A stretch of DNA of 64,000 nucleotides from Macrostomum lignano (taxonomy: Eukaryota). Of this stretch, positions 610-64,000 are shown piece by piece (within the stretch, counting starts at the first letter, position 1; each line of letters opens with the position of its first letter). The position numbers were made by a program, and so were the translations under genes. Under the pieces are notes generated by a model, which did no database searches, was not told where the DNA came from, and saw only the letters and a list, made by a program, of their open reading frames with translations. The stretch covers positions 248,001 through 312,000 of the forward strand of contig NIVC01000340.1 in the NCBI GenBank assembly GCA_002269645.1, read 5' to 3'.

Positions 610-1965
610 CATTCAAGCTGTGAAAAGCCCTATCGGAGACAAATTGACATCAATTTGACATCATTTTACACTACCTGGGATTAGTCTCTATCCGAGATAT
701 CTTGAAATTATTTAACACTAACTGGGACAAGTCAATATCAGAGACATTTTGACTTCGATTTGACATCATTTTACACTAACTGGGATAAGTCTATCAGAGA
801 CATTTTGACATCAATTTGACATCATTTTACACTAACTGGGACAAGTCCCTATCGACATTTTGACATCAGTTTTACATTATTTTACACTAACTGGGACAAG
901 TCCCTATCGACATTTTGACATTAGTTTTACATCATTTTACACTAACTGGGACAAGTCCCTATCAGAGACATTTTGACATCAATTTGACATTATTTTACAC
1001 TAACTGGGACAAGTCCCTATCAGAGACATCAATTTGACATCATTTTACGCTAACTGGGACAAGTCCCTATCAGAGACATTTTGACATCAATTTGACATTA
1101 TTTTACACTAACTGGGACAAGTCCCTATCAGAGACATTTTGACATTATTTTACGCTAACTGGGACAAGTCCCTATCAGAGACATTTTGACATCAATTTGA
1201 CATTATTTTACACTAACTGGGACAAGTCCCTATCAGAGACATCAATTTGACATCATTTTACGCTAACTGGGACAAGTCCCTATCAGAGACATTTTGACAT
1301 CAGTTTTACATTATTTTACACTAACTGGGACAAGTCCCTATCGACATTTTGACATTAGTTTTACATCATTTTACACTAACTGGGACAAGTCCCTATCAGA
1401 GACATTTTGACATCAATTTGACATTATTTTACACTAACTGGGACAAGTCCCTATCAGAGACATCAATTTGACATCATTTTACGCTAACTGGGACAAGTCC
1501 CTATCAGAGACATTTTGACATCAATTTGACATTATTTTACACTAACTGGGACAAGTCCCTATCAGAGACATCAATTTGACATCATTTTACGCTAACTGGG
1601 ACAAGTCCCTATCAGAGACATTTTGACATCAATTTGACATTATTTTACACTAACTGGGACAAGTCCCTATCAGAGACATCAATTTGACATCATTTTACGC
1701 TAACTGGGACAAGTCCCTATCAGAGACATTTTGACATCAATTTGACATTATTTTACACTAACTGGGACAAGTCCCTATCAGAGACATTTTGACATCATTT
1801 TACACTAACTGGGACAAGTCGCTATCAGAGACATCAATTTGACATCATTTTACACTAACTGGGACAAGTCCCTATCAGAGACATTTTGACATCAAGTTGA
1901 CATTATTTTACACTAACTGGGACAAGTCCCTATCAGAGACATTTTGACTTCATTTTACACTAAAT
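610..1965 (+). repeat. Minisatellite array, units of ~51-60 bp (TTTTACACTAACTGGGACAAGTCCCTATCAGAGACATTTTGACATCAATTTGACATTA and shorter variant)
   Basis: Directly visible tandem copies; degenerate at both edges. Confidence 0.97.
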
Positions 1966-2257
1966 AGGACACGTCCCCGCAACAGCTAGATAGTTTGTCA
2001 ATTACGACAACTGTTTTTTAAGTTTCTTTTCCTTCAGATGCAGAATTAAAAGTCAGTGTGTAATCAGTAATTTTTTATGCTTTCGGCTCTCGGTTCGACG
2101 GCAGAAGCAAGCAAGACTTTTTTGTTTGCACTCTTCAGTAAGTGAATCCATTTTCTGATGCATAAATATTATTAATATTATGATCATATTTGAAAAGAAA
2201 ATAACAGTTGAAAGCAATTCTTTGTCGTTCTCTCTAAATAACAAATCGCGCACTGAT

Positions 2258-3235
2258 TCAAGCAGACTGGCCGAGCAATTCGTTAGCTGCCTGCTGAGAA
2301 GTGAGAGTGGCGTCAAGCTGCTTGAGCTGCGGCAGTATTAGCAGCACTTTACGCCTATAAGCCGCATCCGGCGTCTTGTCCGACGTGTAGAAAATCGGAT
2401 TGTGCTCAAACAGCACAGTGCTCAACCTTGGCAAGCTGGTTAGTTTTTCAATTTCGGCAAAATTATCTAATCGATTATTGTCAAGCCACAGCTCTTCGAG
2501 GGAAGTCAAATTAGACAAATTATCCAGACTTGAAATTCGATTCTGAGCCAAATCAAGGATTCGCAGATTAGTCAACGTGTCAAGATTTTCAATTCGTTGG
2601 ATACCGTTCTCAGATAAGTAGAGCTCGTTAAGCTGGGTGAGATGGCCAAGATTCTCAATGCTGGTGAGCCTATTAGCGGCTAAAGCTAAGATTCTCAACT
2701 GCGTGAGCCGTTCCAAGCCTTCAATGCGAGAGATCTTATTAGAGCCGAGGTATAACTCGCGCAGATTAGTCAGAGTGTCCAGACTTTCAATCTGGCGGAT
2801 TCTATTCGCGCCTAATTCGAGAATCTCCAACTCAATCAAACTGTCCAAGCATTCAATCTTGCCAATACGATTCTGCACCAAGTAGAGTTTACGCAGCCTC
2901 ACTAAAGTCTCCAATCCTTCAATCTTTGATAGGCGATTAAATGACACGTCCAAGTGTTCGAGTTTAGTCAGCTGCTCCAAGTTCTCCAGGCGTTCGATTT
3001 GATTGTCGTACAGATCGAGTTCGGTCAGGGTGCCAGCCAGGCAGCCCACATTCTCAATCGCTTTGAGCAGATTGTTGCGAAAGCAGAGCGCACGAATTTT
3101 GGTTAGACACTCTAGACCAGCTAAACGGCCAATGCGGCTGTGCTCAAAGTCCAGCGACTCAGCCTCGGGGTCCGTTATCTCAGGGACCAGCGGCTCAGCT
3201 GACTGCTGCTGCTGGTGAGAATCTCCGTTGGACAT
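2258..3235 (-). CDS. PPP1R7: Protein phosphatase 1 regulatory subunit 7 (Sds22), leucine-rich repeat protein, single exon, 325 aa
   Basis: LDFEHSRIGRLAGLE start of LRRs, ~11 Sds22-type LRRs (LxxLDLYDNQIxxIENL) and LRR cap (NPI...YRRKV..LPQLKQLDA). True ATG at 3235 (MSNGDSHQQQ); the longer ORF to 3424 is repeat-derived. Confidence 0.92.
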   Translation of the reverse strand: MSNGDSHQQQQSAEPLVPEITDPEAESLDFEHSRIGRLAGLECLTKIRALCFRNNLLKAIENVGCLAGTLTELDLYDNQIERLENLEQLTKLEHLDVSFNRLSKIEGLETLVRLRKLYLVQNRIGKIECLDSLIELEILELGANRIRQIESLDTLTNLRELYLGSNKISRIEGLERLTQLRILALAANRLTSIENLGHLTQLNELYLSENGIQRIENLDTLTNLRILDLAQNRISSLDNLSNLTSLEELWLDNNRLDNFAEIEKLTSLPRLSTVLFEHNPIFYTSDKTPDAAYRRKVLLILPQLKQLDATLTSQQAANELLGQSA

Positions 3236-3295
3236 GATGTCTGCAGTGCATAAGGCGAAAGTGGGTTGGATTGTAAATATGGAGACTCTGGGGAT

Positions 3296-3500
3296 TTGGG
3301 ATCTGGCTGGCTGGTCCAGCAACTGAGGATCTGGGAGGGTGGAGGTGGTCCAGCAACTGAGGATCTGGGAGGGTGGAGGTGGTCCAGCAACTGAGGATCT
3401 GGGAGGGTGGAGGTGGTCCAGCAACTGAGGATCTGGCAGGGTCCCAGCCCAGCAACTGAGGATCTGGCAGGGTCCCAGCCCAGCAACTGAGGATCTGACA
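3296..3500 (-). repeat. Dispersed minisatellite family A (core CCAGATCCTCAGTTGCTGG on gene-sense strand), copy 1
   Basis: ~7 cores with variable spacers, ending ~60 nt upstream of the PPP1R7 ATG. Confidence 0.95.
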
Positions 3501-3907
3501 GAAATGACAGAATACCCGAATCAAGAGCAGCAATCGATCTGGTAAAAAACTTGCTAAATAACAATCTACTAGAAGCAACTATCTATCAATTAAAAATGAC
3601 CCTTTAACACACTAAAATAAACAACTATAAACAGGAATCGCATCATGCATAAGAAATGACAAACAAACATATCGTGTTTTATCTTAGAAATGGAGAAAGA
3701 TTATCAGTTATGAATAATAACTTACAGCAGAAATATTTGACATTGTATTTTTGATTATTAATTTATTAAACGTATTGATGAAATATGATACAATTTATCA
3801 TTAATTAGGTCACGCTGACTAATTAGTAATCAATTAATTAGTTCTATCATGCTATATTAGCATGGTTTGTAAATGCCGTGAGCACAACCTCAAACAGTGC
3901 ACTCAGC

Positions 3908-5511
3908 TCAATCACCAGACGATGAGCTGCTCGAAGAGTCACTGCTCATAGTTTCAACTTGCTCAGCGGATGCACCAGCTGTTGGTTGAGCTTGAGCAGT
4001 TGAAGAGGCTGCAGATGAAGCAGACATTTGCTGCGGATATTGTTGTTGCTGTTGCTGCTGCTGCTGTTGTTGCTGTTGCTGCTGTCTTCCAGCAGCGGCG
4101 GCGGCAGCAGCGGCGGCAGCTGCAGCAGACAAAGAGGCCACCTCTTCAACAATACCCGGCTGAAAGTTGCCGTGCTCATCGACGTGCTTGAGCAGGCCTC
4201 TGGCCATCTCGTTGGCGGTCGGGTAGGGCCGGCGCGGATCGCCGAGGCCCCAGCCGAGGGGCGCCATCACGCCGTTGCTGGCGCTGATTTTGTGCGCAAA
4301 TTTGACCAACTCCTCAGAGTCAGCAGGGTTTTGACAGGCGGTTTGCAGCGATTCTAATTTCTGACGCGAGTAGAATATCGCTACCTGGGATTGGGGTGGC
4401 GGGGAGCGAGTGTACATAAATTGCACTGTCTAGAATAGCTGTGATAGTTATTGGTCGAGAGCGTGAGTAAACAGTCTAAATGGCTCTTATTGGTTGGGAG
4501 CGACTGTACCCTCCTAGAATGGTTCTGATTGGTCAAGAGCAAGTGTACACTGTCTAGAAAAGCTGTGATTGGTCGGGAGCAAATGTACACTGTCTAGAAA
4601 GGCTGTGATTGGTCGGGAGCAAATGTATACTGTCTAGAATGGCTGCGATTGGTCGGGAGCAAATGTACACTGTCTAGAAAGGCTGTGATTCGTCGGGAGC
4701 AAATGTATACTGTCTAAAAAGGCTGTGATTCGTCGGGAGCAAATGTATACTGTCTAGAAAGGCTGTGATTGGTCGGGAGCAAATGTATACTGTCTAGAAT
4801 GGCTGCGATTGGTCGGGAGCAAATGTACACTGTCTAGAAAGGCTGTGATTGGTCGGGAGCAAATGTATACTGTCTAGAAAGGCTGTGATTCGTCGGGAGC
4901 AAATGTATACTGTCTAGAAAGGCTGTGATTGGTCGGGAGCAAATGTATACTGTCTAGAATGGCTGCGATTGGTCGGGAGCAAATGTACACTGTCTAGAAA
5001 GGCTGTGATTGGTCGGGAGCAAATGTATACTGTCTAGAAAGGCTGTGATTCGTCGGGAGTAAATGTATACTGTCTAGAAAGGCTGTGATTGGTCGGGAGC
5101 AAATGTACACTGTCTAGAATGGCTGTGATTGGTCTGCAGCAAGTGCCTTACCGACAGTAATCGATCAGCTTCCATTAGCTGCCGCTGATGCTGACCAATG
5201 GCCAAATCCTGCTGATCAATAAGAGCTCGCAGCTGATTGGCTTTCTCGTGCAGCTGCTGCTGTTTGGCGGCCTGATCGCGCAGTCGGTGCAGTTTAGCCT
5301 CGCGCAAACGAAGCTGCTCAACTAAGGCTTCGCAGTTGAGTTCTAGAGGCTGCTGCTGCTGCTGCTGCTGACCGGATGCTGAGCGGTCCGAAGTGCTGCA
5401 TTGTTCTCGAGTTGCTAAAGCCTCGAAAAGAGCTTTAGATAATAGTTCGATGTCTTCAAGCACTGACAGCATCTTTACTTTGGTGGACGTGGATAGAGCT
5501 AGAGAAGACAT
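3908..5511 (-). CDS. MED4: Mediator subunit 4, two exons (5511-5152, 4384-3908)
   Basis: N-term STKVKMLSVLEDIELLSKAL, coiled coil, and the conserved SEELVKFAHKISASNGVMAPLGWGLGDPRRPYPT motif. GTAAGG donor and CCCAG acceptor join in phase 0. Poly-A/poly-Q/Ser-rich tail. Confidence 0.92.
4430..5135. repeat. 40-bp minisatellite filling the MED4 intron (TGTCTAGAAAGGCTGTGATTGGTCGGGAGCAAATGTACAC)
   Basis: ~17 tandem copies. Confidence 0.97.
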
Positions 5512-5694
5512 GACCTATGCGGCATAAACCAACATTGACAATAATTAGTTACCGAAAATGGAACAGTCAATCTGAAATCACTAATTACATTCTATTTTGT
5601 GCTAGAATACCCTCATAATTACTTTTTAATCTGATTATCTGTAAATATAATCTATCGAATAGTAGGCTTTCTTAGTCTAATCGATCCATCTCAC

Positions 5695-8555
5695 AACTAA
5701 CTGATCTATGGGATAATCTACACCCACTTCATAACTGATCTATGGGATAATCTACACCCACTTCATAACTGATCTATGAGATAATCTATACCTATTTTAT
5801 AACTCATCTATGGGATAATCTATACCTATTTTATAACTCATCTATGGGATAATCTATACCTATTTTATAACTCATCTATGGGATAATCTATACCTATTTT
5901 ATAACTCATCTATGGGATAATCTATACCTATTTTATAACTCATCTATGGGATAATCTATACCTATTTTACAACTCATCTATGGGATAATCTATACCTATT
6001 TTATAACTCATCTATGGGATAATCTATACCTATTTTATAACTCATCTATGGGATAATCTATACCTATTTTATAACTCATCTATGGGATAATCTATACCTA
6101 TTTTATAACTGATCTATGGGATAATCTATACCTATTTTATAACTCATCTATGGGATAATCTATACCTATTTTATAACTGATCTATGGGATAATCTATACC
6201 TATTTTATAACTCATCTATGGGATAATCTATACCTATTTTATAACTGATCTATGGGATAATCTATACCTATTTTATAACTCATCTATGGGATAATCTATA
6301 CCTATTTTATAACTCATCTATGGGATAATCTATACCTATTTTATAACTCATCTATGGGATAATCTATACCTATTTTATAACTGATCTATGGGATAATCTA
6401 TACCTATTTTATAACTCATCTATGGGATAATCTATACCTATTTTATAACTCATCTATGGGATAATCTATACCTATTTTATAACTCATCTATGGGATAATC
6501 TATGCCCATTTTACAACTCATCTATGGGATAATCTATACCTATTTTATAACTCATCTATGGGATAATCTATACCCACTTCATAACTGATCTATGGGATAA
6601 TCTATACCTATTTTATAACTAATCTATGGGATAATCTACACCCACTTCATAACTGATCTATGGGATAATCTAAACCTATTTTATAACTCATCTATGGGAT
6701 AATCTATACCTATTTTATAACTCATCTATGGGATAATCTATACCTATTTTATAACTCATCTATGGGATAATCTATACCTATTTTATAACTCATCTATGGG
6801 ATAATCTATACCTATTTTATAACTCATCTATGGGATAATCTATACCTATTTTATAACTCATCTATGGGATAATCTACACCCACTTCATAACTGATCTATG
6901 AGATAATCTACACCCACTTCATAACTGATCTATGGGATAATCTACACCCACTTCATAACTGATCTATGGGATAATCTACACCCACTTCATAACTGATCTA
7001 TGAGATAATCTACACCCACTTCATAACTGATCTATGAGATAATCTACACCCACTTCATAACTGATCTATGAGATAATCTACACCCACTTCATAACTGATC
7101 TATGAGATAATCTACACCCACTTCATAACTGATCTATGGGATAATCTACACCCACTTCATAACTGATCTATGGGATAATCTACACCCACTTCATAACTGA
7201 TCTATGAGATAATCTACACCCACTTCATAACTGATCTATGAGATAATCTACACCCACTTCATAACTGATCTATGAGATAATCTACACCCACTTCATAACT
7301 GATCTATGGGATAATCTACACCCACTTCATAACTGATCTATGGGATAATCTACACCCACTTCATAACTGATCTATGGGATAATCTACACCCACTTCATAA
7401 CTGATCTATGGGATAATCTACACCCACTTCATAACTGATCTATGAGATAATCTACACCCACTTCATAACTGATCTATGGGATAATCTACACCCACTTCAT
7501 AACTGATCTATGGGATAATCTACACCCACTTCATAACTGATCTATGGGATAATCTACACCCACTTCATAACTGATCTATGGGATAATCTACACCCACTTC
7601 ATAACTGATCTATGGGATAATCTACACCCACTTCATAACTGATCTATGAGATAATCTACACCCACTTCATAACTGATCTATGAGATAATCTACACCCACT
7701 TCATAACTGATCTATGAGATAATCTACACCCACTTCATAACTGATCTATGGGATAATCTACACCCACTTCATAACTGATCTATGAGATAATCTACACCCA
7801 CTTCATAACTGATCTATGGGATAATCTACACCCACTTCATAACTGATCTATGGGATAATCTACACCCACTTCATAACTGATCTATGAGATAATCTACACC
7901 CACTTCATAACTGATCTATGAGATAATCTACACCCACTTCATAACTGATCTATGAGATAATCTACACCCACTTCATAACTGATCTATGGGATAATCTACA
8001 CCCACTTCATAACTGATCTATGGGATAATCTACACCCACTTCATAACTGATCTATGGGATAATCTACACCCACTTCATAACTGATCTATGAGATAATCTA
8101 CACCCACTTCATAACTGATCTATGGGATAATCTACACCCACTTCATAACTGATCTATGGGATAATCTACACCCACTTCATAACTGATCTATGGGATAATC
8201 TACACCCACTTCATAACTGATCTATGAGATAATCTACACCCACTTCATAACTGATCTATGGGATAATCTACACCCACTTCATAACTGATCTATGGGATAA
8301 TCTACACCCACTTCATAACTGATCTATGAGATAATCTATACCCATTTTATAACTCATCTATGATAATCTACACCCACCTCATAACTGATCTATGGGATAA
8401 TCTACACCCACCTCATAACTGATCTATGGGATAATCTACACCCACCTCATAACTGATCTATGGGATAATCTACACCCACCTCATAACTGATCTATGGGAT
8501 AATCTACACCCACCTCATAACTGATCTATGGGATAATCTACACCCACTTCATAAC
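5695..8555. repeat. 34-bp minisatellite of ~2.9 kb between eIF3h and MED4, two subtype blocks
   Basis: ATAACTCATCTATGGGATAATCTATACCTATTTT dominates ~5790-6870; ATAACTGATCTATG(G/A)GATAATCTACACCCACTTC dominates ~6870-8550. Confidence 0.98.
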
Positions 8556-8851
8556 TAATCTAAATGAAAATAAGCAAGTCAAAATTTCTTTTTCAGCTCA
8601 CTAATCACTAATCGAACAAGCTTCGGCAGAACAAAGAAACCGAAGGTTGAACTGCATTTCAATTTCTTTTCAGTCGCAATTTCTATTTTAATTTTTGCCT
8701 TCTTTTGTCATTTCAACTGAAACAGAATCGGCTTGAAAATTGAGCTGTAAAATTCTCAATTTTTTAAGCAAGCTGCAGTCCTGTGGATCGAATGCAACGA
8801 ATTTATCAATCAAAGCCTACACCAATTATTATCATCAGAGTCCAGCTGAAC

Positions 8852-11800
8852 TCAATTGAACTGGATACCCTCAGCCAGCATGAGTTTGCCGTAGGACTGT
8901 CCAACAGTCTCCAGCAGTTCGCTAGTGAACTGGTGCAGCTGGGCCGACACCAGCACGGGATCGAGGGCCACTGGCGGATTTCCAATCTTAGGCAGCTTCG
9001 ACTTGTCGATGGCGTCCTCGCTGAGAGGCTCTTCGCCGCGTTGGGCTCGCTGCTGATTCTCGTAGACTATCTTCATCTTCTGGTCCTGGGTCACGGGATT
9101 GATTGTGTTAGGGTCACGTGATAGATTGTGTGAGGGCCACGTGATTGATTATGCGAAGGTCACGTGATTGATTGTGTGAGGGCCACGTGATTGATTATGC
9201 GGGGGTCACGTGATTGATTATGCGGGGGTCACGTGATTGATTATGCGGGGGTCACGTGATTGATTGTGTGAGGGCCACGTGATTGATTATGCGGGGGTCA
9301 CGTGATTGATTATGTGAGGGCCACGTGATTGATTGTGAGGGCCACGTGATTGATTATGCGGGTGTCACGTGATTGATTGTGTGAGGATCACGTGATTGAT
9401 TATGTGAGGGCCACGTGATTGATTATGTGAGGGCCACGTGATTGATTATGCGGGGGTCACGTGATTGATTATGCGGGGGTCACGTGATTGATTATGTGAG
9501 GGCCACGTGATTGATTATGCGGGGGTCACGTGATTGATTGTGTGAGGGTCACGTGATTGATTATGCGGGGGTCACGTGATTGATTGTGTGAGGGTCACGT
9601 GACTGCTACTTGAGGGTCACGTGACTGCTACTTGAGGGTCACGTGATTGATTATGTGAAGATCATGCGATAAATAATGTGAACATCAAGTGACGGATAAT
9701 GTGAAGATCATGCGATGCATAATGTAAAGGTCATTTGTAGGCAATTAGGATTATAAAAATAATTAGCGAAACACCCGCATACCTGAAGCGCCTTCTCATA
9801 CTTCTTATACGATCGTTGATAATTAAGATATTTGGAGGACTCTTGCAGAATCACTTCGCAACCAGTCGACAGAGACTTCATCTGCCTCTCGAGCTGGCTG
9901 CCCATAGCCAGGCTCAGGCCGGAGAATGCGTTACTAGCGACGCTGTCCTCTAGCTCAGCTAGCAGTACATTAGCCAGGTGACTATTGCGAATAATCACGG
10001 GCAATTCTTGCACTAAATTAGCCTGATTAACCATCAGCTCTTTCATGCGCTGCTGATTCACATTGTCCTCATCGCTCATCAGCTTCACCAGCGCCGGGGA
10101 CAGGCGGAATGCGCGAAATTCCAGCTGACCGCGGCTGGTCTTCAGCGGATTGTACACCAGAGCAACGGCGTCCAGTACACCCACCTGGAATTAGGTGAGA
10201 CTTGAACAATTTATATTTTACTTAGGCTTTTGTACTTAGTTAACTCATGGAGAAACATGCAGTTCGAATGCACTTTTAAATCACATTTCCAGTTAGAGAA
10301 TAATGCACTTTTAATAATCTCTAACTAGAGAATCATGTACTTTTACGAGTAATAATCTCTAATTAGAGAATCATGCACTTTTGATCATATCTAATTAGAG
10401 AATCATGCACTTTTGATCATCTCTAAATAGAGATTCATGCACTTTTGAATAATCCCTAATTAAAGAATCATGCACTTTTGATCATCTCTAAATAGAGATT
10501 CATGCACTTTTGAATAATCCCTAATTAGAGAATCATGCACTTTTGATCATCTCTAATTAGAGAATCATGCACTTTTGATCATATCTAATTAGAGAATCAT
10601 GCACTTTTGATCATATCTAATTAGAGAAGCATGCACTTTTGATCATCTCTAATTAGAGAATCATGCACTTTTGATCATATCTAATTAGAGAATCATGCAC
10701 TTTTGATCATATCTAATTAGAGAATCATGCACTTTTGATCATCTCTAATTAGAGAATCATGCACTTTTGATCATCTCTAATTAGAGAATCATGCACTTTT
10801 GATCATCTCTAATTAGAGATTCATGCACTTTTGAATAATCCCTAATTAGAGAATCATGCACTTTTGATCATATCTAATTAGAGAATCATGCACTTTTGAT
10901 CATCTCTAAATAGAGATTCATGCACTTTTGATCATATCTAATTAGAGAATCATGCACTTTTGATCATCTCTAAATAGAGATTCATGCACTTTTGAATAAT
11001 CCCTAATTAGAGAATCATGCACTTTTGATCATCTCTAATTAGAGAATCATGCACTTTTGATCATATCTAATTAGAGAATCATGCACTTTTGATCATATCT
11101 AATTAGAGAATCATGCACTTTTGATCATATCTAATTAGAGAATCATGCACTTTTGATCATATCTAATTAGAGAATCATGCACTTTTGATCATATCTAATT
11201 AGAGAATCATGCACTTTTGATCATCTCTAATTAGAGAATCATGCACTTTTGATCATCTCTAATTAGAGAATCATGCACTTTTGATCATATCTAATTAGAG
11301 AATCATGCACTTTTGATCATCTCTAAATAGAGATTCATGCACTTTTGAATAATCCCTAATTAGAGAATCATGCACTTTTGATCATCTCTATTAGAGAATG
11401 ATGCTCTTTAAAAATCTTGAATTAAATAATCACACGATCTAAAATCTCACATTACTAATAAAATGACCAAATTAGTTACTAAACACACCTGATAGTGGAA
11501 CTGCGATTCCACAAACTCTTTAGTAAGAAACTCGGCCCCAGCGGAGCTCTGGTACCAGCCAACAGTCAGATAGTCGGCATTGAGCTGGCGAAAATTCTTC
11601 TGTATATCCAGCTGATACTTGGCCGCGTCAAATTCGGCAACTGGCACAATGCCAAAGCCGCTATTGGCCGCCTCTTCGTCGTCGGATTGGCGAGGAAACG
11701 GGAAACAGTTGGTGATCTCCAGGCGGGTGTCCTGGACCAGACCGAACAGTAGTCCCTGGAGCAAATGGAAACGGTTTTTGTATTAAATACGATTTTCTAC

Positions 11801-12902
11801 TAATGAAGACTACTATGAGTAGGCAGAAGGGACATTAAGTTTCCAAAAAGGTGTTGTACAGTTCATGATTTACTGAAGTTACTGAAGCACATGATTTTAG
11901 GGAATAAAATTAAAGGCCGCTTAAGGACACTATCATGCATATTAATTTAACTAAACAGTGTGCCAATTTTTGGTCTAGTTCAATTATTCCACTGGTATAT
12001 TTAGCGCCACAGGTGAGATTTTAGCGCCATATGTGGGTTTTAGCGCGATAGTTAAGAATTTAGCGCCACAGATGATACTCTAGCGCCATAGTTGAGAATT
12101 TAGCGCTATAGGTGAGTTTTAGCGCCATAGTTGAGAATTTAGCGCCATAGGTGAGTTTTAGCGCCATAGTTAAGAATTTAGCGCCATATGTGAGTTTTAG
12201 CGCCATAGTTAAGAATTTAGCGCCATATGTGAGTTTTAGCGCCATAGGTGAAATTTTAGCGCCAATGGTGAGATTTTAGCGCCATAAGTGTGATTTTAGC
12301 GCCATAGTTAAGAATTTAGCGCCATAGGTGAGAATTTAGCGCCGCAGGTGAGAAATTAGCGCCGCAGGTGAGAAATTAGCGCCTCAGGTAAGAATTTAGC
12401 GCCGCAAGTGAGAAATTAGCGCCATAGATAAGAATTTAGCGCCGCAGGTGAGATTTGAGCACCGCAAGTAAGACTTTAGCACCACAGGTGAGATTCTAGC
12501 GCCGAAGGTGAGAAATTAGCGCCATAGGTGAGAATTTAGCGCCGCAGGTGAGAAATTAGCGCCACAGATGAGATTTACGGCATATCGGCATACATCAATG
12601 ACTACAACTCTCACCTGAACAATCCTATTACCGCTCATCTGCTCCTCGTGAAAGTGTTTAGCAATTTTCAGCACTACAAGGCCTTCCATGACAACTTGTT
12701 GAACGCTGCTAGCGTCCTCGTCGTCAATTGCCGGAGCGGAGGCGGCCGCAACGGCGGCGGCGGCAACGGAAGCAGCGCTCGGCTGCGGCTGCTGCGAATG
12801 GCTGCCACCGCCGCCATAGCCTCCGTGACCGTGGCCGTGGCCGTGACCGTAACCGTAACCGTGACCGTGCTGATACGGCCTTCGATGATGGGAGTAGGAC
12901 AT
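8852..12902 (-). CDS. EIF3H: Translation initiation factor 3 subunit H, four exons (12902-12615, 11755-11489, 10184-9783, 9085-8852), 396 aa
   Basis: VQQVVMEGLVVLKIAKH, QGLLFGLV..RLEITNCFPFP, VGWYQS, VALVYNPLKTSRGQLEFRAFRL, IIRNSHLANVLL, C-term GEEPL...GKLMLAEG. All introns GT-AG, phase 0. Confidence 0.93.
9090..9720. repeat. 23-bp minisatellite in eIF3h intron 3 (GTCACGTGATTGATTATGCGGGG)
   Basis: ~25 copies, each with a TCACGTGA palindrome; array abuts the acceptor. Confidence 0.96.
10300..11400. repeat. 32-bp minisatellite in eIF3h intron 2 (TAATTAGAGAATCATGCACTTTTGATCATCTC)
   Basis: ~33 tandem copies. Confidence 0.97.
11995..12570. repeat. ~20-bp minisatellite in eIF3h intron 1 (TTAGCGCCATAGGTGAGAAT)
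   Basis: ~28 copies. Confidence 0.96.
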
Positions 12903-13324
12903 TATTCCTCTTTTTCTTTGCAGCGATTGAAAACTTTGGGGATGTTATTGCATGCATTAGTAATTAAAAATATTGATTATAACCACAACTGCCTGCTTAC
13001 ATGTTAGTAATATGAATAGCATATAAAAGTTAAAAAAACTCACAATTAAAAAGAGGAAATAATTACTTGGCCAAGCACCCACGTTGTTTTGTTTTAAAAA
13101 GTACAATTAAGGTTTATTCAATTGTGATCAACTTGTTTTAAATTGGTAGGAAGAATACAATAAAAACTAGTAAAAGCACACTGTATAAGGAAGAACATTG
13201 TAGCGAGCTACATTTTTATTAATGGACTTAAAATAATTTTAAATAGAAAATTTGCAATCAAATCAAGTTAGTATAGGTGGATTCTTTTACAAAATAAAAA
13301 CTCTCGATTCGGTCTGGGCCACTT

Positions 13325-13740
13325 TAACCAATGATAAAAAAATTGTCGGGAGAGTAAAGGAAAGTTTGGGGCAACTCCAGCCAATGAGTGTGGAGCTTTG
13401 GCAGAGAAGGGAGGAAGATGTGTAAGACCATTACAGCCAATGAGAGCGAAGCTTGAGGAGCGGGAGAAGGAATATGTTTAAAACCATTACAGCCAATGAG
13501 AGCGAAGCTTAAGGAGCGGGGGAAGGAATATGTTTAAAACCATTTCAGCCAATGAGAGCGAAGCTTGAGGAGCGGGGAGGAAAATGTGTAAAACTATTTT
13601 AGCCTATGAAAGCGACGTCTCAGGAGGGGGAGGGAATGAAAAATGATTAAGACCATTTCAGCCAATGATAGCGGATATAGGGGAGAGGGGGACGGAAAAT
13701 GAATAGGACTATTTCAGTCAATAGTAGCAAAGCTTGGACC
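13325..13740 (+). repeat. Degenerate ~56-bp tandem repeat carrying CCAAT boxes, between TMEM205 and eIF3h
   Basis: AGCCAATGA at ~13379, 13436, 13492, 13548, 13660, plus degenerate copies. Confidence 0.85.
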
Positions 13741-52948: not shown

Positions 52949-53305
52949 GATTGAATTTATTGATTAAACTGAATCTGTTGCGCTTTTGTGCTTGTCATCC
53001 GGATCATTGCAGATATTGCTCTTTAGCATGCCATGCAAGCGCTGTAGTCTGCATTGTGCACTATTTTATTGTGTCAGATCTCGGTTCCTACTGTAAGTAT
53101 TGAAATTGCTTATATAATATATTGTTATTATAATAATCAAATGGTTTGTTCAGTCAGTGCCTAAGACTGTTAATTCTTGCTTTTTTAAATCCTTCCCTGC
53201 AGTCTATCCAAGCTTATTTTTAACCTTTTCATCCTTGCGTTGGCTTACTACTACTGCTAACAGCTACCTGTCAGTAGTATACTATGATGATTTTCCGTTT
53301 GATCT

Positions 53306-53612
53306 GGGGGTCGAAGCTTAGTGGTCAGAGCGTCGGACTCACGACCAAAAGGTCGGGGGTTCGATTCCTGATCTCACTCGGAACAATTCGTCTCACTGAG
53401 CAAGACACTTAACTCTGCATTGCTTCAGCTCACCCAGCTGTAAAATGGGTGCCAGCATTAGCTGGGGATAATTGAGGGTGTGTGAGGATCCCACAGTCCT
53501 GGGACTGAACAGCCGTACGCAGCCTTCAAATGCGCCGCGCAAAATAGCTGCGGCTGAGCTGTCGGTTGCACATCTGCCCAATAGTACAGGTGTAATTTAT
53601 TATTATTAATTA
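53306..53612 (+). mobile_element. CORE-like SINE family C, copy 2
   Basis: Clearly homologous to the copy at 50323 (TCGGACTCACGA, CACTTAACTCTGCATTGC, GTGCCAGCATTAGCTGGG); (TTA)n tail. Confidence 0.8.
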
Positions 53613-54361: not shown

Positions 54362-54905
54362 TCACCAGCCTCCCAAATCCTCAGTTGCTGGGCCAGCCTC
54401 CCAGATCCCCAGTTGCTGGGCCAGCCTCCCAGATCCTCAGTTGCTGGGCCAGCCTCCCAGATCCTCAGTTGCTGGGCCAGCCTCCCAGATCCTCAGTTGC
54501 TGGGCCAGCCTCCCAGATCCCCAGTTGATGGGCCAACCTCCCAGATCCCCAGTTGCTGGGCCAGCCTCCCAGATTCCCAGTTGCTGGGCCAGCCTCCCAG
54601 ATTCCCAGTTGCTGGGCCAGCCTCCCAGATTCCCAGTTGCTGGGCCAGCCTCCCATATTTCCAGTTGCTGGGCCAGCCTCCCAGATTCTCAGTTGCTGGG
54701 CCAGCCTCCCAGATCCCCAGTTGCTGGGCCAGCCTCCCAGATCCCCAGTTGTTGGGCCAGCCTCCCAGAGTGTCAGTTGCTGGGCCAACCTCCCAGATCC
54801 CCAGTTGCTGGGCCAGCCTCCCAGATCCCCAGTTGCTGGGCCAGCCTCCCAGATCCCCAGTTGCTGGGCCAGCCTCCCAGATCCCCAGTTGCTGGGCCAG
54901 CCAGC
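54362..54905 (+). repeat. Dispersed minisatellite family A, copy 3 (24-bp CCAGCCTCCCAGATCC(T/C)CAGTTGCTGGG)
   Basis: ~22 copies ending ~70 nt upstream of the PSMB7 ATG. Confidence 0.97.
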
Positions 54906-54973: not shown

Positions 54974-56169
54974 ATGGCCATGCTAGAGGAGCCATCCTGT
55001 CCCGGATTTGTATTCGACAATGTCCTGCGCAATCAGCACCTGCTGGCGAAGTGCGGCGGAGGCAGCCAAGCTGACGCCGCCGCCTCTTCAACCTCGGCGC
55101 TGCCGCGGGCCAAGAAGACGGGCACCACCATAGTTGGCTGCGTATTCAATGGCGGCGTGGTTCTGGGCGCCGATACGCGAGCAACGGAGGGCAACATTGT
55201 GGCCGACAAGGACTGCAGCAAGATTCACTACATATCGGACAGGATCTACTGCTGCGGCGCTGGCACCGCCGCCGACACCGAAATGGTTACTAGGCAGATT
55301 TCGGCTCAAATTTGTCTGCACCGACTGTCTACTGGCCGGTTGCCGAGGGTGATTACGGCCAAGCAGCTGCTCAAGGATTACCTGTTTAGGTAATCCTCTC
55401 TTATTAATTGTGTTTTGGCTATACTGTGTGTTGGGTTGCACTTTCTTAGAAAGAAACACCCGGAGAACTTTAAATGTTGGTCAGAAATACGATTGACTGA
55501 CTGACTGACTGACTGACTGACTGACTGACTTGAGTGACTGACACTGACTGACTGACTGACTGACTGACTGACTGACTGACTGACTGACTGACTGACTGAC
55601 TGACTGACTGACTGACTGACTGACCTACTAATCAACTAACTCTAACTAACTAACTATCTAACTTACTTATTTACTAACCAACTAACTATCTAACTGCCCT
55701 CAGATACCAGGGCTACATCGGCGCCGCCCTAGTCATTGGCGGCGTAGACTACCAGGGTCCGCACCTGTACTCGGTGGCTCCCCACGGCTCGGTGGACTGC
55801 GCCCCCTACATCACCATGGGCAGCGGCAGCCTCGCCGCCATGGCGGTCTTTGAAAGCCGGTTCAAGCCGGATCTGGACCAGGGCCAGGCTGTCCAACTGG
55901 TCCGGGACGCCATCCTAGCCGGCATCTTCAACGATCTCGGCAGCGGCTCCAATGTTGACGTCTGCATCATCCGTCAGGACGGTGTTGAATACCTGCGGCC
56001 CTACCTGAGAGCCAATGAGAAAGGCCAGCGGGCGGCTGTCTACCGAGGCGGCAAGCCGGCTGTGCTGCGCACCGACCGCCGTCCAGTGCTGGCCGACATC
56101 ATCAGCACCCGGATCATCCGCGACTCCGGGGCCGCCCAGGCTGCTGGCGAGACGCCAATGGAAACTTGA
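54974..56169 (+). CDS. PSMB7: 20S proteasome subunit beta-2 (beta type-7), two exons (54974-55389, 55704-56169)
   Basis: Propeptide [10 protein letters not shown], catalytic KTG|[66 protein letters not shown]. Confidence 0.96.
55490..55695 (+). repeat. (CTGA)n microsatellite grading into CTAA(C/T) repeats in the PSMB7 intron
   Basis: Directly visible. Confidence 0.95.
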
Positions 56170-56274: not shown

Positions 56275-56575
56275 TATGACAGTATAAGGATTTATGATTG
56301 AGGATGTGAAGATTGAGGATGTCAAGATTGGGGATGTGAAGATTAGGGATGTGAAGATTGAGGATTAGAAGATTGAGGATCTGAAGATTAGTGGTGTGAA
56401 GATTAAGGATGTGAAGATTGGGGATGTTAAGATTGGGGATGTGAAGATTAGGGATGTGAAGATTGGGGATGTGAAGATTAGGGATGTGAAGATTGAGGAT
56501 TAGAAGATTGGAGATGTGAAGATTAGTGGTGTGAAGATCGAGGATGTGAAGATTGGGGATGTGAAGATTGGAGAT
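56275..56575 (+). repeat. 15-bp minisatellite (GATGTGAAGATTGGG) downstream of PSMB7
   Basis: ~20 copies. Confidence 0.93.
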
Positions 56576-57089: not shown

Positions 57090-57722
57090 TCCTCAGTTGC
57101 TGGGCCGAGCAGGCTGAGTAAAAGCATGTGTCCCAGATCCTCAGTTGCTAAGCCAGCCTCCCAGATCCCCAGTTGCTGGGCCAGCCTCTCAGATGCCCAG
57201 TTGCTGGGCCAGCCTCCCAGATCCCCAGTTGCTGGGCCAGCCTCCCAGATCCCCAGTTGCTGGGCCAGCCTCCCAGATCCCCAGTTGCTGGGCCAGCCTC
57301 CCAGATCCCCAGTTGCTGGGCCAGCCTCCCAGATCCCCAGTTGCTGGGCCAGCCTCCCAGATCCCCAGTTGCTGGGCCAGCCTCCCAGATCCTCAGTTGC
57401 TGGGCCAGCCTCTCAGATCCCCAGTTGCTGGGCCAGCCTCTCAGATCCCCAGTTGCTGGGCCAGCCTCTCAGATCCCCAGTTGCTGGGCCAGCCTCTCAG
57501 ATCCCCAGTTGCTGGGCCAGCCTCCCAGATCCTCAGTTGCTGGGCCAGCCTCCCAGATCCCCAGTTGCTGGGCCAGTCTCCCAGATCCCCAGTTGCTGGG
57601 CCAGCCTCTCAGATCCCCAGTTGCTGGGCCAGCCTCCCAGATCCTCAGTTGCTGGGCCAGCCTCCCAGATCCCTAGTTGCTGGGCCAGCCTCTCAGATCC
57701 CCAGTTGCTGGGCCAGCCTCCC
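57090..57722 (+). repeat. Dispersed minisatellite family A, copy 4
   Basis: ~25 copies of the 24-bp unit. Confidence 0.97.
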
Positions 57723-57796
57723 AATTCCTCGGTTGATTTATTAATTAAAATTCGCTGTGAGTTTTGAGTCCAGCGACGCCAGTGCATTTTGTTTTA

Positions 57797-58055: not shown

Positions 58056-58109
58056 TTTATGTGCTCAGGATTAGACTGAATGAGCAGAATTGCCTCAGCT
58101 ACCGCAGTT

Positions 58110-59180
58110 GGTATTGCTATAGATGCAGCAGTGGGTATTGCTATAGATACAGTGGATATTGCTATAGATACAGCAGCGGGTATTGCTATAGATACAGTGG
58201 ATATTGCTATAGATACAGCAGCGGGTATTGCTATAGATACAGTGGATATTGCTATAGATACAGCAGCGGGTATTGCTATAGATACAGTGGATATTGCTAT
58301 AGATACAGCAGCGGGTATTGCTATAGATACAGTGGATATTGCTATAGATACAGCAGTCGGTATTGCCATAGATATAGCAGTTGGTATTGCTATAGATACA
58401 GCAGTGGGTATTGCTATAGATACAGTGGATATTGCTATAGATACAGCAGCGGGTATTGCTATAGATACAGTGGATATTGCTATAGATACAGCAGCGGGTA
58501 TTGCTATAGATACAGTGGATATTGCTATAGATACAGCAGCGGGTATTGCTATAGATACAGTGGATATTGCTATAGATACAGCAGCGGGTATTGCTATAGA
58601 TACAGTGGATATTGCTATAGATACAGCAGCGGGTATTGCTATAGATACAGTGGATATTGCTATAGATACAGCAGCGGGTATTGCTATAAATACAGTGGAT
58701 ATTGCTATAGATACAGCAGCGGGTATTGCTATAGATACAGTGGATATTGCTATAGATACAGCAGTCGGTATTGCCATAGATATAGCAGTTGGTATTGCTA
58801 TAGATACAGCAGTGGGTATCGCTATAGATACAGCAGTGGGTATCGCTTTAGATACAGCAGTGGGTATCGCTATAGATGCAGCAGTGGGTATTGCTATAGA
58901 TACAGTGGATATCGCTATAGATACAGCAGTTGGTATTGCTATAGATACAGCAGTGGGTATCGCTATAGATGCAGCAGTTGGTATCGCTATAGACACAGCA
59001 GTGGGTATCGCTATAGACACAGCAGTGGGTATCGCTATAGACACAGCAGTTGGTATTGCTATAGATACAGCAGTGGGTATCGCTATAGATACAGCAGTGG
59101 GTATCGCTATAGATACAGTGGGTATCGCTATAGATACAGCAGTGGGTATCGCTATAGATGCAGCAGTGGGTATCGCTGTC
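58110..59180 (+). repeat. 24/21-bp alternating (45-bp higher-order) minisatellite (GCTATAGATACAGCAGCGGGTATT / GCTATAGATACAGTGGATATT)
   Basis: Directly visible; produces the spurious long ORFs at 57992-59249. Confidence 0.97.
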
Positions 59181-60922: not shown

Positions 60923-62077
60923 CTATCCAGCTCCGTTTGCATTTACTGTCGCCACTTGGGCCTCCGAGTTGGTGCCGCTGTACTGCCGATTCTTGATGCA
61001 GTCGACTTTAAACGTGGCCAAAACGCTCCTCTTAAACGGCAGGTTGCGAGCCATGAGCACAAAGAAATTGATGCTCTGATTCACCAGTCCGATGACCAGG
61101 CTCATAAAGAACAAATTTGCGGCCACACTGATGAGGCTCATGTCTCCATAGCTTACCAAGGTGAAGTCGAGCACCTCCAGAAACAGGCGAAACACCAGCA
61201 GCGGCGTGTGCAGGATCAGGTAGAGGACAGTCAGTATGAGCACAACCAACGCACCGAAGTATTCATTCGAGTTCAACTCCTGCTGCTCATTGCCAGAATT
61301 CGACAACATCCGGTGCTGTTTCAGAGCCGACACAACTTGACGCACTAGGAAACAGTTGAGTATGAGCATGAGCAGAATCCCGAGCAGAGGCGGATTAGAC
61401 ATCACGGATGTGTAGACCATCATGCCCAGCCGATATTCGGGCAGGTGAGAGCAGAGCAGCACAACCGCAGTGGCCGTCTCCGACACGGCGTGGTGCCCAA
61501 CGAAGATGCCGTTCGGCAGGGCGATCAGAGCGGACAGGACGAACGTGCCAGCCAGGACCTTGACAGCGGTTCCGATGCCGACATTCTTCATGGCCAGCGG
61601 CCGGTGGACAGCCAGCAGTCGGTCCATCACCAGCACCAGCAGCCAAGCGCAGGACAGAGCCTGGCAGAAGTTCAGCGAGTAGCGGGACACCTTGCACATG
61701 CTGTCGCTCAGGTTGGAGGCGAAGAACCCGAAACTGCCAGCCGTGAGCCAAGGCAGGCCTTTGTTGAGAAACACACTGAATATGCCGACGATGATGAGGC
61801 TAAGGTTGTCAGCAGCGGCGATGCAGCCCAGGTACAAATTCTGACGAGTCAGCGGCCTGAGGCTGCCCAGCATCACGTAGGCAACGATGGAGTTCCCAAT
61901 CAAGCCGACAATGATGACGATCGGTAGCAGCAGTCCCGACATGACGCCCACCACGTGCGACAGGACGCAGAACAGGTGCTTGCCCGGATCTCCGCTCTGA
62001 CAGTCTCTCACCATCTGCAAAGCACTCTCGACGTACAAAGTGACGCGGCGACCAGGCGATCCAGCTGAGTCATTCAT
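60923..62077 (-). CDS. Intronless-CDS rhodopsin-like class A GPCR, neuropeptide/orphan type, 384 aa
   Basis: Seven hydrophobic segments; GLIGNSIV (TM1), YLGCIAAADNL (TM2), C..S (TM3), MDRLLAVHRP (DRY-like), LHTP (TM6), SINFF (TM7). Confidence 0.9.
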   Translation of the reverse strand: MNDSAGSPGRRVTLYVESALQMVRDCQSGDPGKHLFCVLSHVVGVMSGLLLPIVIIVGLIGNSIVAYVMLGSLRPLTRQNLYLGCIAAADNLSLIIVGIFSVFLNKGLPWLTAGSFGFFASNLSDSMCKVSRYSLNFCQALSCAWLLVLVMDRLLAVHRPLAMKNVGIGTAVKVLAGTFVLSALIALPNGIFVGHHAVSETATAVVLLCSHLPEYRLGMMVYTSVMSNPPLLGILLMLILNCFLVRQVVSALKQHRMLSNSGNEQQELNSNEYFGALVVLILTVLYLILHTPLLVFRLFLEVLDFTLVSYGDMSLISVAANLFFMSLVIGLVNQSINFFVLMARNLPFKRSVLATFKVDCIKNRQYSGTNSEAQVATVNANGAG

Positions 62078-62922
62078 GTCGCTTCAGCGAAATCTGAGCA
62101 CAAAATGATTTAGATCGCGAATTTTTCTCAGTAGGTCGAGATTGAGAAAAAAGCTGAAATGTTGCTCTCGATTTTTTTCATCGGGTCTTCATCGATTTGG
62201 ACGCATCGTCCAATGACAGCAGACAGGTGCTTGTAGCGACTCTTCAACTGGTTACAATTTGTCAATTCGTTTTTTGTCAGCAACCGGATATTAATTCATT
62301 TACCTGGGAAAAGAGTAGCGGAGGGATCGAGGATCATGCAGCTGGCGTCCCAGATCGGGTTGAATTCTTCAAGCCACTGCAGATACTTGCGCAGAAAGAG
62401 GCAATTAATGCTACGGGCCATTTTAGTTACAGGTAAAATTTTAGCATGTAGTTTTTTTACCTCAAAGCACTCAACTAAGTCAAGACTACAGTTTGTTTGG
62501 CTACTTATAGTAGTATCAGGTATTTTAAACTATTTTAAACGGAACGGAGTAAAAAAACAAGCACTTACCCCGTGTCAACTCTTCATACTCTAAGCAAGGT
62601 GAGCACATTATAGGTAAGGCCCCATGGCTACAGCTTCACAACACAGCACAGGTACGAATAAAACTGCTATTCATTCTGCACTAACTTACTCCGCACAAAT
62701 AGCATCTGCTCTTCTACTAAACACACTTTTTTTACTGACCAAAAGCAGCAGCAGCAGGTGCTCAATTTCTTGTATTTGCCCTGCTGCTGCTCTCTCGCTC
62801 AATTTCTGTCCGCACTTTCGAGCACTTCATCTCTCTCTGTCTGTCCCAGCTGCCGCACTCTCACCCAAGATTTGGATATCTACGAAAAACGAAGAGAGAA
62901 AAACTGAGAGAGAGAAAACGCG

Positions 62923-63334
62923 ATGGACTCTCTGCAAGCAAGTCCGCCAAGAAGTCTGCATCAGCTGTACACAATTCTTCTTGAAGAGCTGTCACGAGTT
63001 CGAGCGCAGCTAACCAGTCTAGAATTCGAGTTTTACAGTCAGGACGGCACAGAAGATGACGCAATGCAGGCTCCCAGATCAGGTGCCGCAGATTCCGATG
63101 TCGACGCTTACGCATTTATCTGCCGTTGGGCACCGGTTGCTAAGGAGGTGATGCAGTGCCACAGCCTCGCTGAGCTGAACTCGATGCGCCAGATGCAGTC
63201 CGCCATCGTGCTGGGTCGGGATCCCGAGCTGAGGGAGGCGCAGCCGGATCTCAAGCATATCAAGCCGGAGACTTGCATTAAACTGACTCGACTCCAGAAT
63301 CGCCTGCTGGCCTATGTGCCTAGCAGGTTTACGG
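62923..63334 (+). CDS. Probable first coding exon of an unknown gene, continuing beyond the window
   Basis: Non-repetitive 137-codon ORF with GC-rich codon usage like the other genes; GTGGGT donor-like site directly before an intron-type array. Confidence 0.55.
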
Positions 63335-63344
63335 GTGGGTGACA

Positions 63345-64000
63345 TGTGTGTTAATTGCGTCAGGAGCTGGGTGTGATTGCGTCAGGAACTGGGTGTGACT
63401 GCGTCAGGAACTGGGTCTGACTGCACGCGTCAGGAACTGGGTGTGATTGCCAGGAACTGGATGTGACTGCGTCATGAACTGGGTGTGACTGCGTCAGGAA
63501 CTGGATGTGACTGCGTCAGGAACTGGGTGTGACTGCGTCAGGAACTGGATGTGACTGCGTCAGGAACTGGGTGTGACTGCACGCGTCAGGAACTGGATGT
63601 GACTGCGTCAGGAACTGGGTCTGACTGCACGCGTCAGGAACTGGGTGTGATTGCCAGGAACTGGATGTGACTGCGTCATGAACTGGATGTGACTGCGTCA
63701 TGAACTGGGTGTGACTGCGTCAGGAACTGGATGTGACTGCGTCAGGAACTGGGTGTGACTGAGTCAGGAACTGGGTGTGACTGCACGCGTCAGGAACTGG
63801 GTGTGACTGAGTCAGGAACTGGGTGTGACTGAGTCAGGAACTGGGTGTGACTGAGTCAGGAACTGGGTGTGACTGAGTCAGGAACTGGGTGTGACTGAGT
63901 CAGGAACTGGGTGTGACTGAGTCAGGAACTGGGTGTGACTGAGTCAGGAACTGGGTGTGACTGAGTCAGGAACTGGGTGTGACTGAGTCAGGAACTGGGT
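63345..64000 (+). repeat. 22-bp minisatellite (GTCAGGAACTGGGTGTGACTG[C/A]), runs off the window end
   Basis: ~29 copies. Confidence 0.96.

Follow-up and report, generated by a model that had tools for sequence, protein, structure and literature searches.

Classical minisatellites, or variable number tandem repeats (VNTRs), consist of head-to-tail units with high within-array identity, and their copy number varies while the consensus of the unit is kept. Foldback transposons carry long inverted arms of short tandem subrepeats, and the recursive splice sites (ratchet points) known from long introns of Drosophila and vertebrates are juxtaposed YAG/GTRAGT motifs, the slash here and below marking the junction. 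Introns are also said to arise from tandem arrays: in a model reportedly put forward by Zhuo and colleagues in 2007, donor and acceptor both lie in repeat units and splicing takes place between units. Introner elements, described in Micromonas and others (PMC3488318), are many near-identical whole-intron copies in unrelated genes. In C. elegans, the intronic minisatellite CeRep25B lies near alternative exons (PMC4039745), and Helitron-borne minisatellites have been remodelled into PATCs (preprint 10.64898/2026.08.08.743475). Here we analyze a gene-dense stretch of 64,000 nt of Macrostomum lignano DNA (contig NIVC01000340.1; hereafter the window, to which all counts refer unless stated) with tandem arrays in most of its large introns and many of its intergenic spacers. 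An earlier note on this DNA had seen a likeness to splice signals in many array units and proposed that the arrays may arise by tandem amplification of DNA next to splice sites and act as decoy or recursive splice sites or as a mechanism of lineage-specific intron expansion.

The arrays have the unit size (14–67 nt), tandem order and copy-number hypervariability by which minisatellites and VNTRs are defined, and we consider them probably to be ordinary hypervariable minisatellites of the M. lignano genome. They differ from classical VNTRs in their density, which is extreme for gene-rich DNA (21,010 of 64,000 nt, or 33%), most large introns and spacers holding an array of their own, and in that several of them run into working splice sites. 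With introners they share intronic repeats that nearly reach the donor and acceptor and, in introns 1 to 3 of eIF3h, lineage-specific hosts; however, each intron here mostly has its own tandem array, only OSBP introns 3, 4 and 5 sharing a family within the window, the arrays also fill intergenic DNA, and one host intron, OSBP intron 8, is ancient. As in the reported tandem-array model, each unit in OSBP intron 8 and in the MED4 intron holds a copy of the working acceptor, whereas the donors lie in unique sequence beyond the arrays and a donor-like GTRAG is lacking in the sense units. Acceptor-like sequence inside long introns is a feature shared with recursive splicing, but YAG/GTRAGT is missing from all sense units. 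Inverted arms similar to those of foldback transposons are present twice (27171–27502 with 28062–28414, and 33414–33627 with 33834–34934), but no transposase is found and one pair encloses telomere-like CCCTAA repeats. The nearest animal parallels are the intronic minisatellites of C. elegans, which likewise lie in introns of expressed genes, are in some cases borne by mobile elements and have proposed roles in splicing and chromatin; here, in contrast, the arrays of one family (F1, see below) show no Helitron ends or shared flanks, and the only carrier has inverted-repeat ends.

Simple and tandem repeats make up 15% of the M. lignano genome (PMC5730564), and the nature of its repeats has been stated as yet to be worked out (PMC10468722). 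The window gives a base-level view of the tandem-repeat fraction in gene-rich DNA of a regeneration model with a hard-to-assemble genome. Intron and spacer sizes set by arrays, copy-number differences and the overlap with acceptors bear on gene annotation, on the design of transgenes and promoters, and on read mapping.

Tandem arrays in introns and spacers

Gene models were built by hand from open reading frames (ORFs), Pfam matches and splice logic and contain 19 introns in total. For the spliced eIF3h model, a comparison with the annotated M. lignano protein BOX15_Mlig021371g3 of NCBI reported 100% identity over 396 residues, and our own count was 395 of 396; the annotated protein shows that the eIF3h arrays are removed with their introns by splicing. 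Exact-sequence look-ups of the PPP1R7, G protein-coupled receptor (GPCR), spliced OSBP, PSMB7 and MED4 models returned no match, probably owing to allelic or copy differences, and these models are based on homology and splice logic only. The acceptor of OSBP intron 5 could be placed only to 48883, 48952 or 49045.

Using Tandem Repeats Finder, we identified about 35 distinct arrays with 3–84 copies and 78–97% within-array identity (Table 1), while three dinucleotide-preserving shuffles of the window gave 51, 0 and 0 nt called as array. The arrays take up 43% of intron, 38% of intergenic and 2% of coding nucleotides. Sixteen of the 19 introns are longer than 300 nt, and 12 of these hold arrays covering 20–94% of the intron; subtracting the arrays leaves 44–561 nt in the array-bearing introns. 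Arrays are found in six of the seven spacers between same-strand genes and cover 27–86% of them. The four large introns with no array are OSBP introns 1 and 7 and DYNC2LI1 introns B and D: the 5-kb OSBP intron 1 has transposon remnants instead, and OSBP intron 7 and DYNC2LI1 intron B carry pieces resembling short interspersed elements (SINEs). The earlier note was thus right that arrays fill most introns over 300 nt and many spacers, the three small introns being 64, 89 and 116 nt long; the splice motifs that it saw in the units, on the other hand, do not exceed chance, as detailed below.

The same note had described a different array at each place. An all-against-all comparison of the unit consensuses instead grouped arrays into six families (F1–F6) spanning several loci, and what had been listed as OSBP intron 8 and a separate last OSBP intron is a single intron with two arrays. 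When the flanks of the four F1 arrays were compared, we found no common sequence, no transposon ends and no Helitron features.

Turnover between homologous copies

The locus of BOX15_Mlig021371g3 (NIVC01000517.1, assembly Mlig_3_7; hereafter L001) is collinear with positions 1–26458 of the window at about 91–98% identity (~96%), and the sequences are not the same. We take the window to be a second copy, whether as an allele, as a duplicate stemming from the hidden polyploidy known for the species, or as the product of another assembly. Arrays lie at the same places in both copies, and since L001 is an independent sequence, an assembly artifact is ruled out. The unit consensus is identical in five of the eight arrays compared and differs at one, four and six positions in the remaining three, the MED4 array having six fixed differences in 40. 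The copy numbers have changed much more, with 84 copies in the window vs. 10 in L001 for the 34-mer of the eIF3h–MED4 spacer, 35 vs. 53 in eIF3h intron 2, 25 vs. 31 in eIF3h intron 3, 17 vs. 13 in the MED4 intron and 23 vs. 4 or fewer for the 58-mer at 618. This behavior of the arrays between copies is that of a textbook minisatellite.

Through the differences in copy number, single introns change by up to ~580 nt between the two copies. With arrays making up 43% of intron bases and a mean intron length of 1,114 nt in M. lignano vs. 558 and 692 nt in two congeners (PMC10468722), i.e., about twofold, the proposal of a lineage-specific intron expansion is supported.

A 2.1-kb segment (22996–25116) is present in the window and missing from L001. 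Inverted repeats of 19 nt lie near its two ends (23013–23031 and 25087–25105), and it carries a 21-mer array at 24328–24909; judged from its sequence, the segment is likely a mobile element that harbors a minisatellite. As this array lies within a presence/absence segment with inverted-repeat ends, at least one array appears to be carried by a mobile element. The combination of whole-segment presence/absence and terminal inverted repeats was seen for this array only and not for the four F1 arrays, which have no shared flanks. The segment also has CT-rich and GA-rich inverted low-complexity arms, and part of the low-complexity sequence is similar to 32724–32978.

In the reverse-complemented L001 sequence, positions 1–4697 are a 4.7-kb array of about 204 copies of the 23-mer ACTCTAAGGACAGTTTAGAGGCG, which stops ~380 nt before the region matching the first base of the window.

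Splice-signal content of the units

According to the earlier note, many units contain acceptor or branch-point motifs on the transcribed strand. Every string that it quoted is indeed present on the strand given, but the frequency of such motifs is not above chance. The 19 real acceptors of the window are low in information, with CAG/G following a G-poor stretch and no strong pyrimidine tract. We trained an acceptor position weight matrix (PWM) on the window, leaving the four array-touching acceptors out of the training, and scored the units against their antisense and shuffled versions. The sense score was greater than the antisense score in 11 of the 14 intronic arrays. Most array scores were below the median of the real acceptors, and shuffled units were outscored (p ≤ 0.05) only by the HOGA1 family, OSBP intron 5 and a single F1 array. 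Counted by family (our own arithmetic), sense exceeded antisense in 9 of 12 cases (two-sided sign test, ~0.15), and the Fisher-combined shuffle p was ~0.26.

As a branch module, we considered YTRAY followed after 5–40 nt by YAG, no other YAG intervening; 12 of the 19 real acceptors qualify. Among the intronic array families, the complete module was found in one on the sense strand (OSBP i8a) and in three on the antisense strand, while the shuffles predict about 1.4, which speaks against units serving as decoy 3′ splice sites. The array-bearing introns contained no sense GTRAGT, and no sense GTRAG except for single copies in eIF3h intron 2 and OSBP intron 8; on the antisense strand, there were 12 in the array of OSBP intron 4, 17 in that of eIF3h intron 1 and 11 in that of eIF3h intron 3. 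None of the sense units in the window introns contained the recursive junction YAG/GTRAGT. The one array rich in AGGT is that of DYNC2LI1, where the motif reads CTGAG/GTTGG and is poor on both sides.

The number of independent families, ~19, is too small for a genome-wide question. Among them, the PWM, the pyrimidine-tract test described below and the branch module all lacked a significant excess on the sense strand, and the general enrichment of splice motifs and the recursive sites that had been proposed found no support, the latter with no unit containing even YAG/GTRAG. What we observed is a weak lean to pyrimidine-rich sense strands without significant enrichment of acceptors or branch points. 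Recursive splicing finds no support, and the sense strand tends, if anything, to avoid complete splice modules and donors.

Arrays at working splice sites

Several arrays reach close to a splice site: the MED4 array begins 9 nt downstream of its donor, and the distance to the acceptor is 8 nt for the PSMB7 repeats and 16 nt for the OSBP intron 4 array. In total, four arrays end at most 16 nt from an acceptor, against a rough expectation of ~1.3 based on the non-array lengths.

The 67-nt unit of OSBP intron 8 closes with ...AACCCGCAG/G, and its CAG ends at 52469, 52537, 52604, 52671, 52738 and 52805; the sixth copy is the real acceptor. With splicing at 52805, 26 residues separate LEEKQR from WF, as is most common in homologues, and the intron interrupts a glycine codon in phase 1, 10 residues ahead of a conserved tryptophan. 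The position is that of the last intron in Armadillidium (isopod), Hymenolepis (tapeworm), Echinostoma (fluke) and Dendrobates (frog). An alternative acceptor at 52832 was rejected: it would leave 17 residues between LEEKQR and WF, compared with at least 19 (mode 26) in 17 homologues, and break the position and phase common to the four other animals, with the phase and glycine codon checked for Armadillidium only. As 52805 is real and the position conserved, the last 67 nt of an ancient intron, acceptor included, have been tandemly copied, and the age of the position makes the array a secondary fill-in. The choice of the last among six near-identical acceptors by the spliceosome is an old question, testable here as transgenesis works in the species.

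The final 82 nt of the MED4 intron are two degenerate units running into the acceptor, and the acceptor CCAATCCCAG aligns with CCAATCACAG of the unit. A candidate acceptor at 4430 was discarded, the annotated intron length in L001 fitting 4385 instead. The array of eIF3h intron 3 abuts the acceptor, its last unit stopping 2 nt short of the end of the AG, and the 515 nt before this acceptor contain no AG; the 167 nt before the PSMB7 acceptor are likewise without AG. Amplification of splice-site-adjacent DNA, the origin suggested earlier for the arrays in general, is supported in two to three of the 13 intronic arrays (OSBP intron 8 and MED4, with eIF3h intron 3 abutting the AG).

The antisense strand of the eIF3h intron 1 array reads AGGTGAGA, which is donor-like. 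The donor context of this intron, AG/GTGAGA, is the exact reverse complement of TCTCACCT, present in each of the 29 downstream units (11999–12614). From sequence complementarity, the 5′ splice site may pair with the array in the pre-mRNA, although GTGAG/CTCAC are splice-related words and the match could be due to chance.

Ages of the array-bearing introns

Six eIF3h intron positions are common to Hydra, the crinoid Anneissia, the brachiopod Lingula and the annelid Capitella (after about amino acids 76, 140, 196, 230/231, 280 and 325 in M. lignano numbering), and none of the six is found in M. lignano. Its three introns, after amino acids 96, 185 and 319, are lineage-specific, all in phase 0 and at CAG/G, leave the protein alignment undisturbed and consist of 67–94% array. 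In the C-terminal region of OSBP, the widely shared RKV/TG intron is missing in M. lignano; intron 7 (50198–50777) is lineage-specific and array-free, and intron 8, with its two arrays, is ancient. With lineage-specific eIF3h introns and the ancient OSBP intron 8 both bearing arrays, new and old introns are occupied alike.

We looked for traces of intron gain in the sequences. The array units showed no similarity to the flanking exons beyond that of shuffles, and the intron ends did not resemble the adjoining exon in any of the 19 introns (ungapped identity 3–14 of 30 nt); none of the 19 looks like the product of a tandem duplication of exon sequence containing AGGT. An array-masked self-comparison of the window revealed no sharing of sequence between introns except two short SINE-like pairs, along with repeats inside OSBP intron 1. 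That repeat-bearing DNA, in the form of arrays or their carriers, inserts at exonic CAG/G in the Macrostomum lineage and gives rise to new spliceosomal introns is a possibility that we hold to be unlikely. If true, intron turnover would be driven by the same tandem-repeat dynamics as the filling of spacers, with eIF3h as the type case; the link between the heavy intron turnover of eIF3h and repeats is a second testable question.

Weighing the explanations

The simplest reading is that the arrays colonize any non-coding DNA. They are present in essentially any such sequence, introns and spacers alike; from one homologous copy to the other, they change quickly in number of units but keep the unit sequence, and large introns and spacers owe much of their length to them. 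The arrays would expand and contract by replication slippage and unequal exchange, and their spread within introns would be limited only by the sequence required by the spliceosome, for which reason several arrays may run right up to a donor or acceptor. Where an array extends over the 3′ end of the intron, as in OSBP intron 8 and MED4 intron 1, the last unit would supply the working acceptor and the other units would be acceptor-like by descent, while the array of eIF3h intron 3 would only abut the AG. Elsewhere, the likeness to splice sites may come from the low information of the acceptors (CAG/G, G-poor) combined with the richness of a few families in C and T. For the mild strand asymmetry, in which sense GTRAG and branch modules are rarer, selection against harmful cryptic sites would be a better explanation than a function in splicing.

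Several observations weigh against this. A strong pyrimidine tract (at least 8 pyrimidines of 10) with YAG was found in three families on the sense strand (F1, HOGA1 and OSBP intron 5) and in none on the antisense strand, with ~1.3 families expected from composition alone. On the sense strand, C outnumbers G in the intronic arrays (27.5% vs. 17.4% of bases; 10 families against 6), a skew not seen in intron sequence outside arrays. The four F1 arrays are all oriented alike with respect to the strand of the local genes, and two of them end 70–75 nt upstream of the start codons of PPP1R7 and PSMB7. In HOGA1 intron 2, the sole possible acceptor is a weak, A-rich AAG/G (CAACAAAAAG/G) with a CTAAT branch-like motif, and the array places 19 strong CCCTTCCTCAG sites 240–850 nt upstream of it. 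The trends in pyrimidine tracts with CAG, F1 orientation, C-skew and HOGA1 all point the way of the earlier note, and ~19 families are too few to dismiss them.

In a functional reading, units would be selected as sense copies of acceptors or branch points and act as decoys, recursive sites or stepwise platforms aiding the removal of long introns. The strand bias of the pyrimidine tracts and of the PWM scores agrees with it, as do the true copies of a working acceptor in the OSBP intron 8 and MED4 units and the CTAAC/CTGAC run just before the PSMB7 acceptor. However, a junction such as YAG/GTRAG is missing and the DYNC2LI1 alternative is poor on both sides, complete branch modules are found in fewer sense than antisense families and at about the expected number, most PWM scores lie below the real-acceptor median with three families beating shuffles, several arrays are entirely without AG, and the same kinds of arrays fill intergenic spacers. 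Arrays as splice-signal copies with a function in splicing are mostly not supported here, and we rate this reading as very improbable; what survives of the earlier interpretation is the intron expansion and, for the few arrays named above, the amplification of splice-site DNA, while enrichment and decoy or recursive function do not. A regulatory role, with arrays as clusters of protein-binding sites or mechanically special DNA kept as enhancers, promoters or insulators, would match the CCAAT-box words in the MED4 intron array (GACCAATCAC, 17 times) and upstream of eIF3h (AGCCAATGAG, six times), the palindrome TCACGTGA that occurs 25 times in the eIF3h intron 3 array (9088–9658), the F1 arrays directly upstream of two start codons in fixed orientation, and the conservation of the unit consensus between the two copies; in C. 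elegans, intronic minisatellites that derive from Helitrons serve as insulators of chromatin (preprint 10.64898/2026.08.08.743475). Yet some factor-like word is expected in any unit of 20–60 nt, consensus conservation is expected from concerted evolution and from young duplicates, and an up to 8-fold variation in copy number argues against tight constraint; we hold such a role to be very improbable.

Finally, the arrays could reflect intron birth: array-bearing or quickly expanding DNA would insert at exonic CAG/G in the manner of introners, and array-filled introns would be young rather than inflated old ones. The eIF3h gene, with no ancestral intron and three unique phase-0 introns made largely of array, fits this, and so do the arrays reaching nearly to donor and acceptor, as in Micromonas introners (PMC3488318), and the related arrays in three adjacent OSBP introns. 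Against this, two arrays lie in the ancient OSBP intron 8 and none in the lineage-specific intron 7, array density is about equal in intergenic (38%) and intron sequence (43%), each eIF3h intron has its own array with no termini in common, neither flanking-exon similarity nor a trace of tandem duplication was found, and CAG/G at both junctions is expected from the splice consensus alone. On balance, we find such an origin improbable and favor ordinary minisatellites that occupy introns and spacers alike.

Gene content and other features

The genes of the window form two head-to-tail same-strand clusters, five genes on the minus strand at 2261–17417 and four on the plus strand at 28722–56168. 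M. lignano has polycistronic precursors that are resolved by spliced-leader trans-splicing (PMC5730564), and given the same-strand clusters, the spacers and their arrays may be transcribed.

Table 1. Genes, tandem arrays and array families of the window. Copy numbers are given as ×n; spacers and flanks are named by the adjacent genes.
Feature	Position	Strand	Details
58-nt unit array	618–1956	.	higher-order 108/166 nt, ~23 copies; downstream of PPP1R7
PPP1R7	2261–3238	minus	intronless
F1 array	3312–3501	minus	sense unit CCTCCACCCTCCCAGATCCTCAGTTGCTGGACCA; ~75 nt upstream of PPP1R7 start codon
MED4	3911–5511	minus	ORF/Pfam/splice logic
MED4 intron 1	4385–5151	minus	767 nt; GTAAGGCAC, then 40-mer array 4467–5142 (17 copies)
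34-mer array	5698–8562	minus	84 copies, 97% identity; 86% of eIF3h–MED4 spacer
eIF3h	8858–12902	minus	validated model
eIF3h exons	12902–12615, 11755–11489, 10184–9783, 9085–8858	minus	hand-built model, matched to annotated protein
eIF3h intron 3	9086–9782	minus	697 nt, 94% array; 23-mer TCACATAATCAATCACGTGACCC ×25
eIF3h intron 2	10185–11488	minus	1304 nt, 86% array; 32-mer ×35
eIF3h intron 1	11756–12614	minus	859 nt, 67% array; 20-mer TCTCACCTATGGCGCTAAAT ×29
56-mer array	13378–13701	minus	×5.8, unit with AGCCAATGAG; DUF4149–eIF3h spacer
DUF4149 gene	13796–14326	minus	ORF/Pfam
F1 array	15123–16044	minus	~31 copies; spacer upstream of DUF4149 gene
Unnamed gene	from 16191	minus	
Two 14-mer arrays, inverted	27171–28414	.	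27171–27502 and 28062–28414
HOGA1	about 28775–30677	plus	
HOGA1 intron 2	29440–30338	plus	899 nt; 32-mer CCCTTCCTCAGTCCCTGAATCTGCCTCTCCGC ×19 at 29492–30097
32-mer array	30815–31783	plus	×30; F3, related to HOGA1 intron 2; downstream of HOGA1
Inverted arrays	33414–34934	.	33414–33627 and 33834–34934; flank degenerate (CCCTAA)n
DYNC2LI1	about 35441–38835	plus	5′ end approximate
DYNC2LI1 intron	35858–36962	plus	1105 nt, 78% array; 31-mer ×28 at 36030–36895
OSBP	40668–52955	plus	
OSBP introns 3, 4, 5	46450–46907, 47359–47699, 48173–48661 within 46381–48952	plus	related 21–23-mer arrays, same orientation (F6)
OSBP intron 8	51228–52805	plus	1578 nt, phase 1; 37-mer array 51255–51870 (×16.6) and 67-mer array 52406–52806 (×6)
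F1 array	54365–54902	plus	×19; ~70 nt upstream of PSMB7 start codon
PSMB7	54974–56168	plus	
PSMB7 intron	55390–55703	plus	314 nt; (TGAC)n and (CTAA-type)n repeats at 55494–55695
15-mer array	56296–56575	plus	PSMB7 3′ flank
F1 array	57131–57723	plus	×21; 1 kb downstream of PSMB7
24/45-mer array	58100–59177	.	×47, contains TTGCTATAG
Rhodopsin-type receptor (GPCR)	60926–62077	minus	single exon
ORF	62923–63339		
22-mer array	63356–64000	.	×29, continues past window end
Family F1	3312, 15123, 54365, 57131		28–34-mer
Family F2	33414/33834		inverted pair
Family F3			HOGA1 intron 2 and HOGA1 3′ flank
Family F4	27171/28062		inverted pair
Family F5	59934/60746		
Family F6			OSBP introns 3, 4, 5

The two 14-mer arrays directly upstream of HOGA1 are mutual reverse complements 560 nt apart and, from their arrangement, look like the arms of a foldback-type element. 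The spacer between HOGA1 and DYNC2LI1 contains ~160 nt of degenerate telomere-type (CCCTAA)n sequence at 33627–33790, forming the core of a foldback-like palindrome.

In OSBP intron 1, the region 41226–42393 contains a GIY-YIG endonuclease remnant (41639–41920, minus strand) with direct and inverted internal repeats. The remnant is typical of Penelope-like retroelements, and transposon debris is what makes this intron large. The SINE-like pairs are 84–85% identical (50325–50503 with 53315–53492, and 37544–37604 with 49695–49755), the copies being located in OSBP intron 7, the OSBP 3′ flank, DYNC2LI1 intron B and OSBP intron 6. Their translations appear tRNA-related, yet ARAGORN and Rfam gave no report, and no RNA genes turned up in the Rfam and tRNA scans.

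Repeats also contribute to coding sequence. Poly-Ala and poly-Gln runs of MED4 are repeat-encoded (4040–4126). The eIF3h protein has an N-terminal extension of ~60 residues, rich in His, Gly, Tyr and Ala (12725–12902) and not present in orthologues, part of which is encoded by a (CCGTGA)n microsatellite at 12823–12869.

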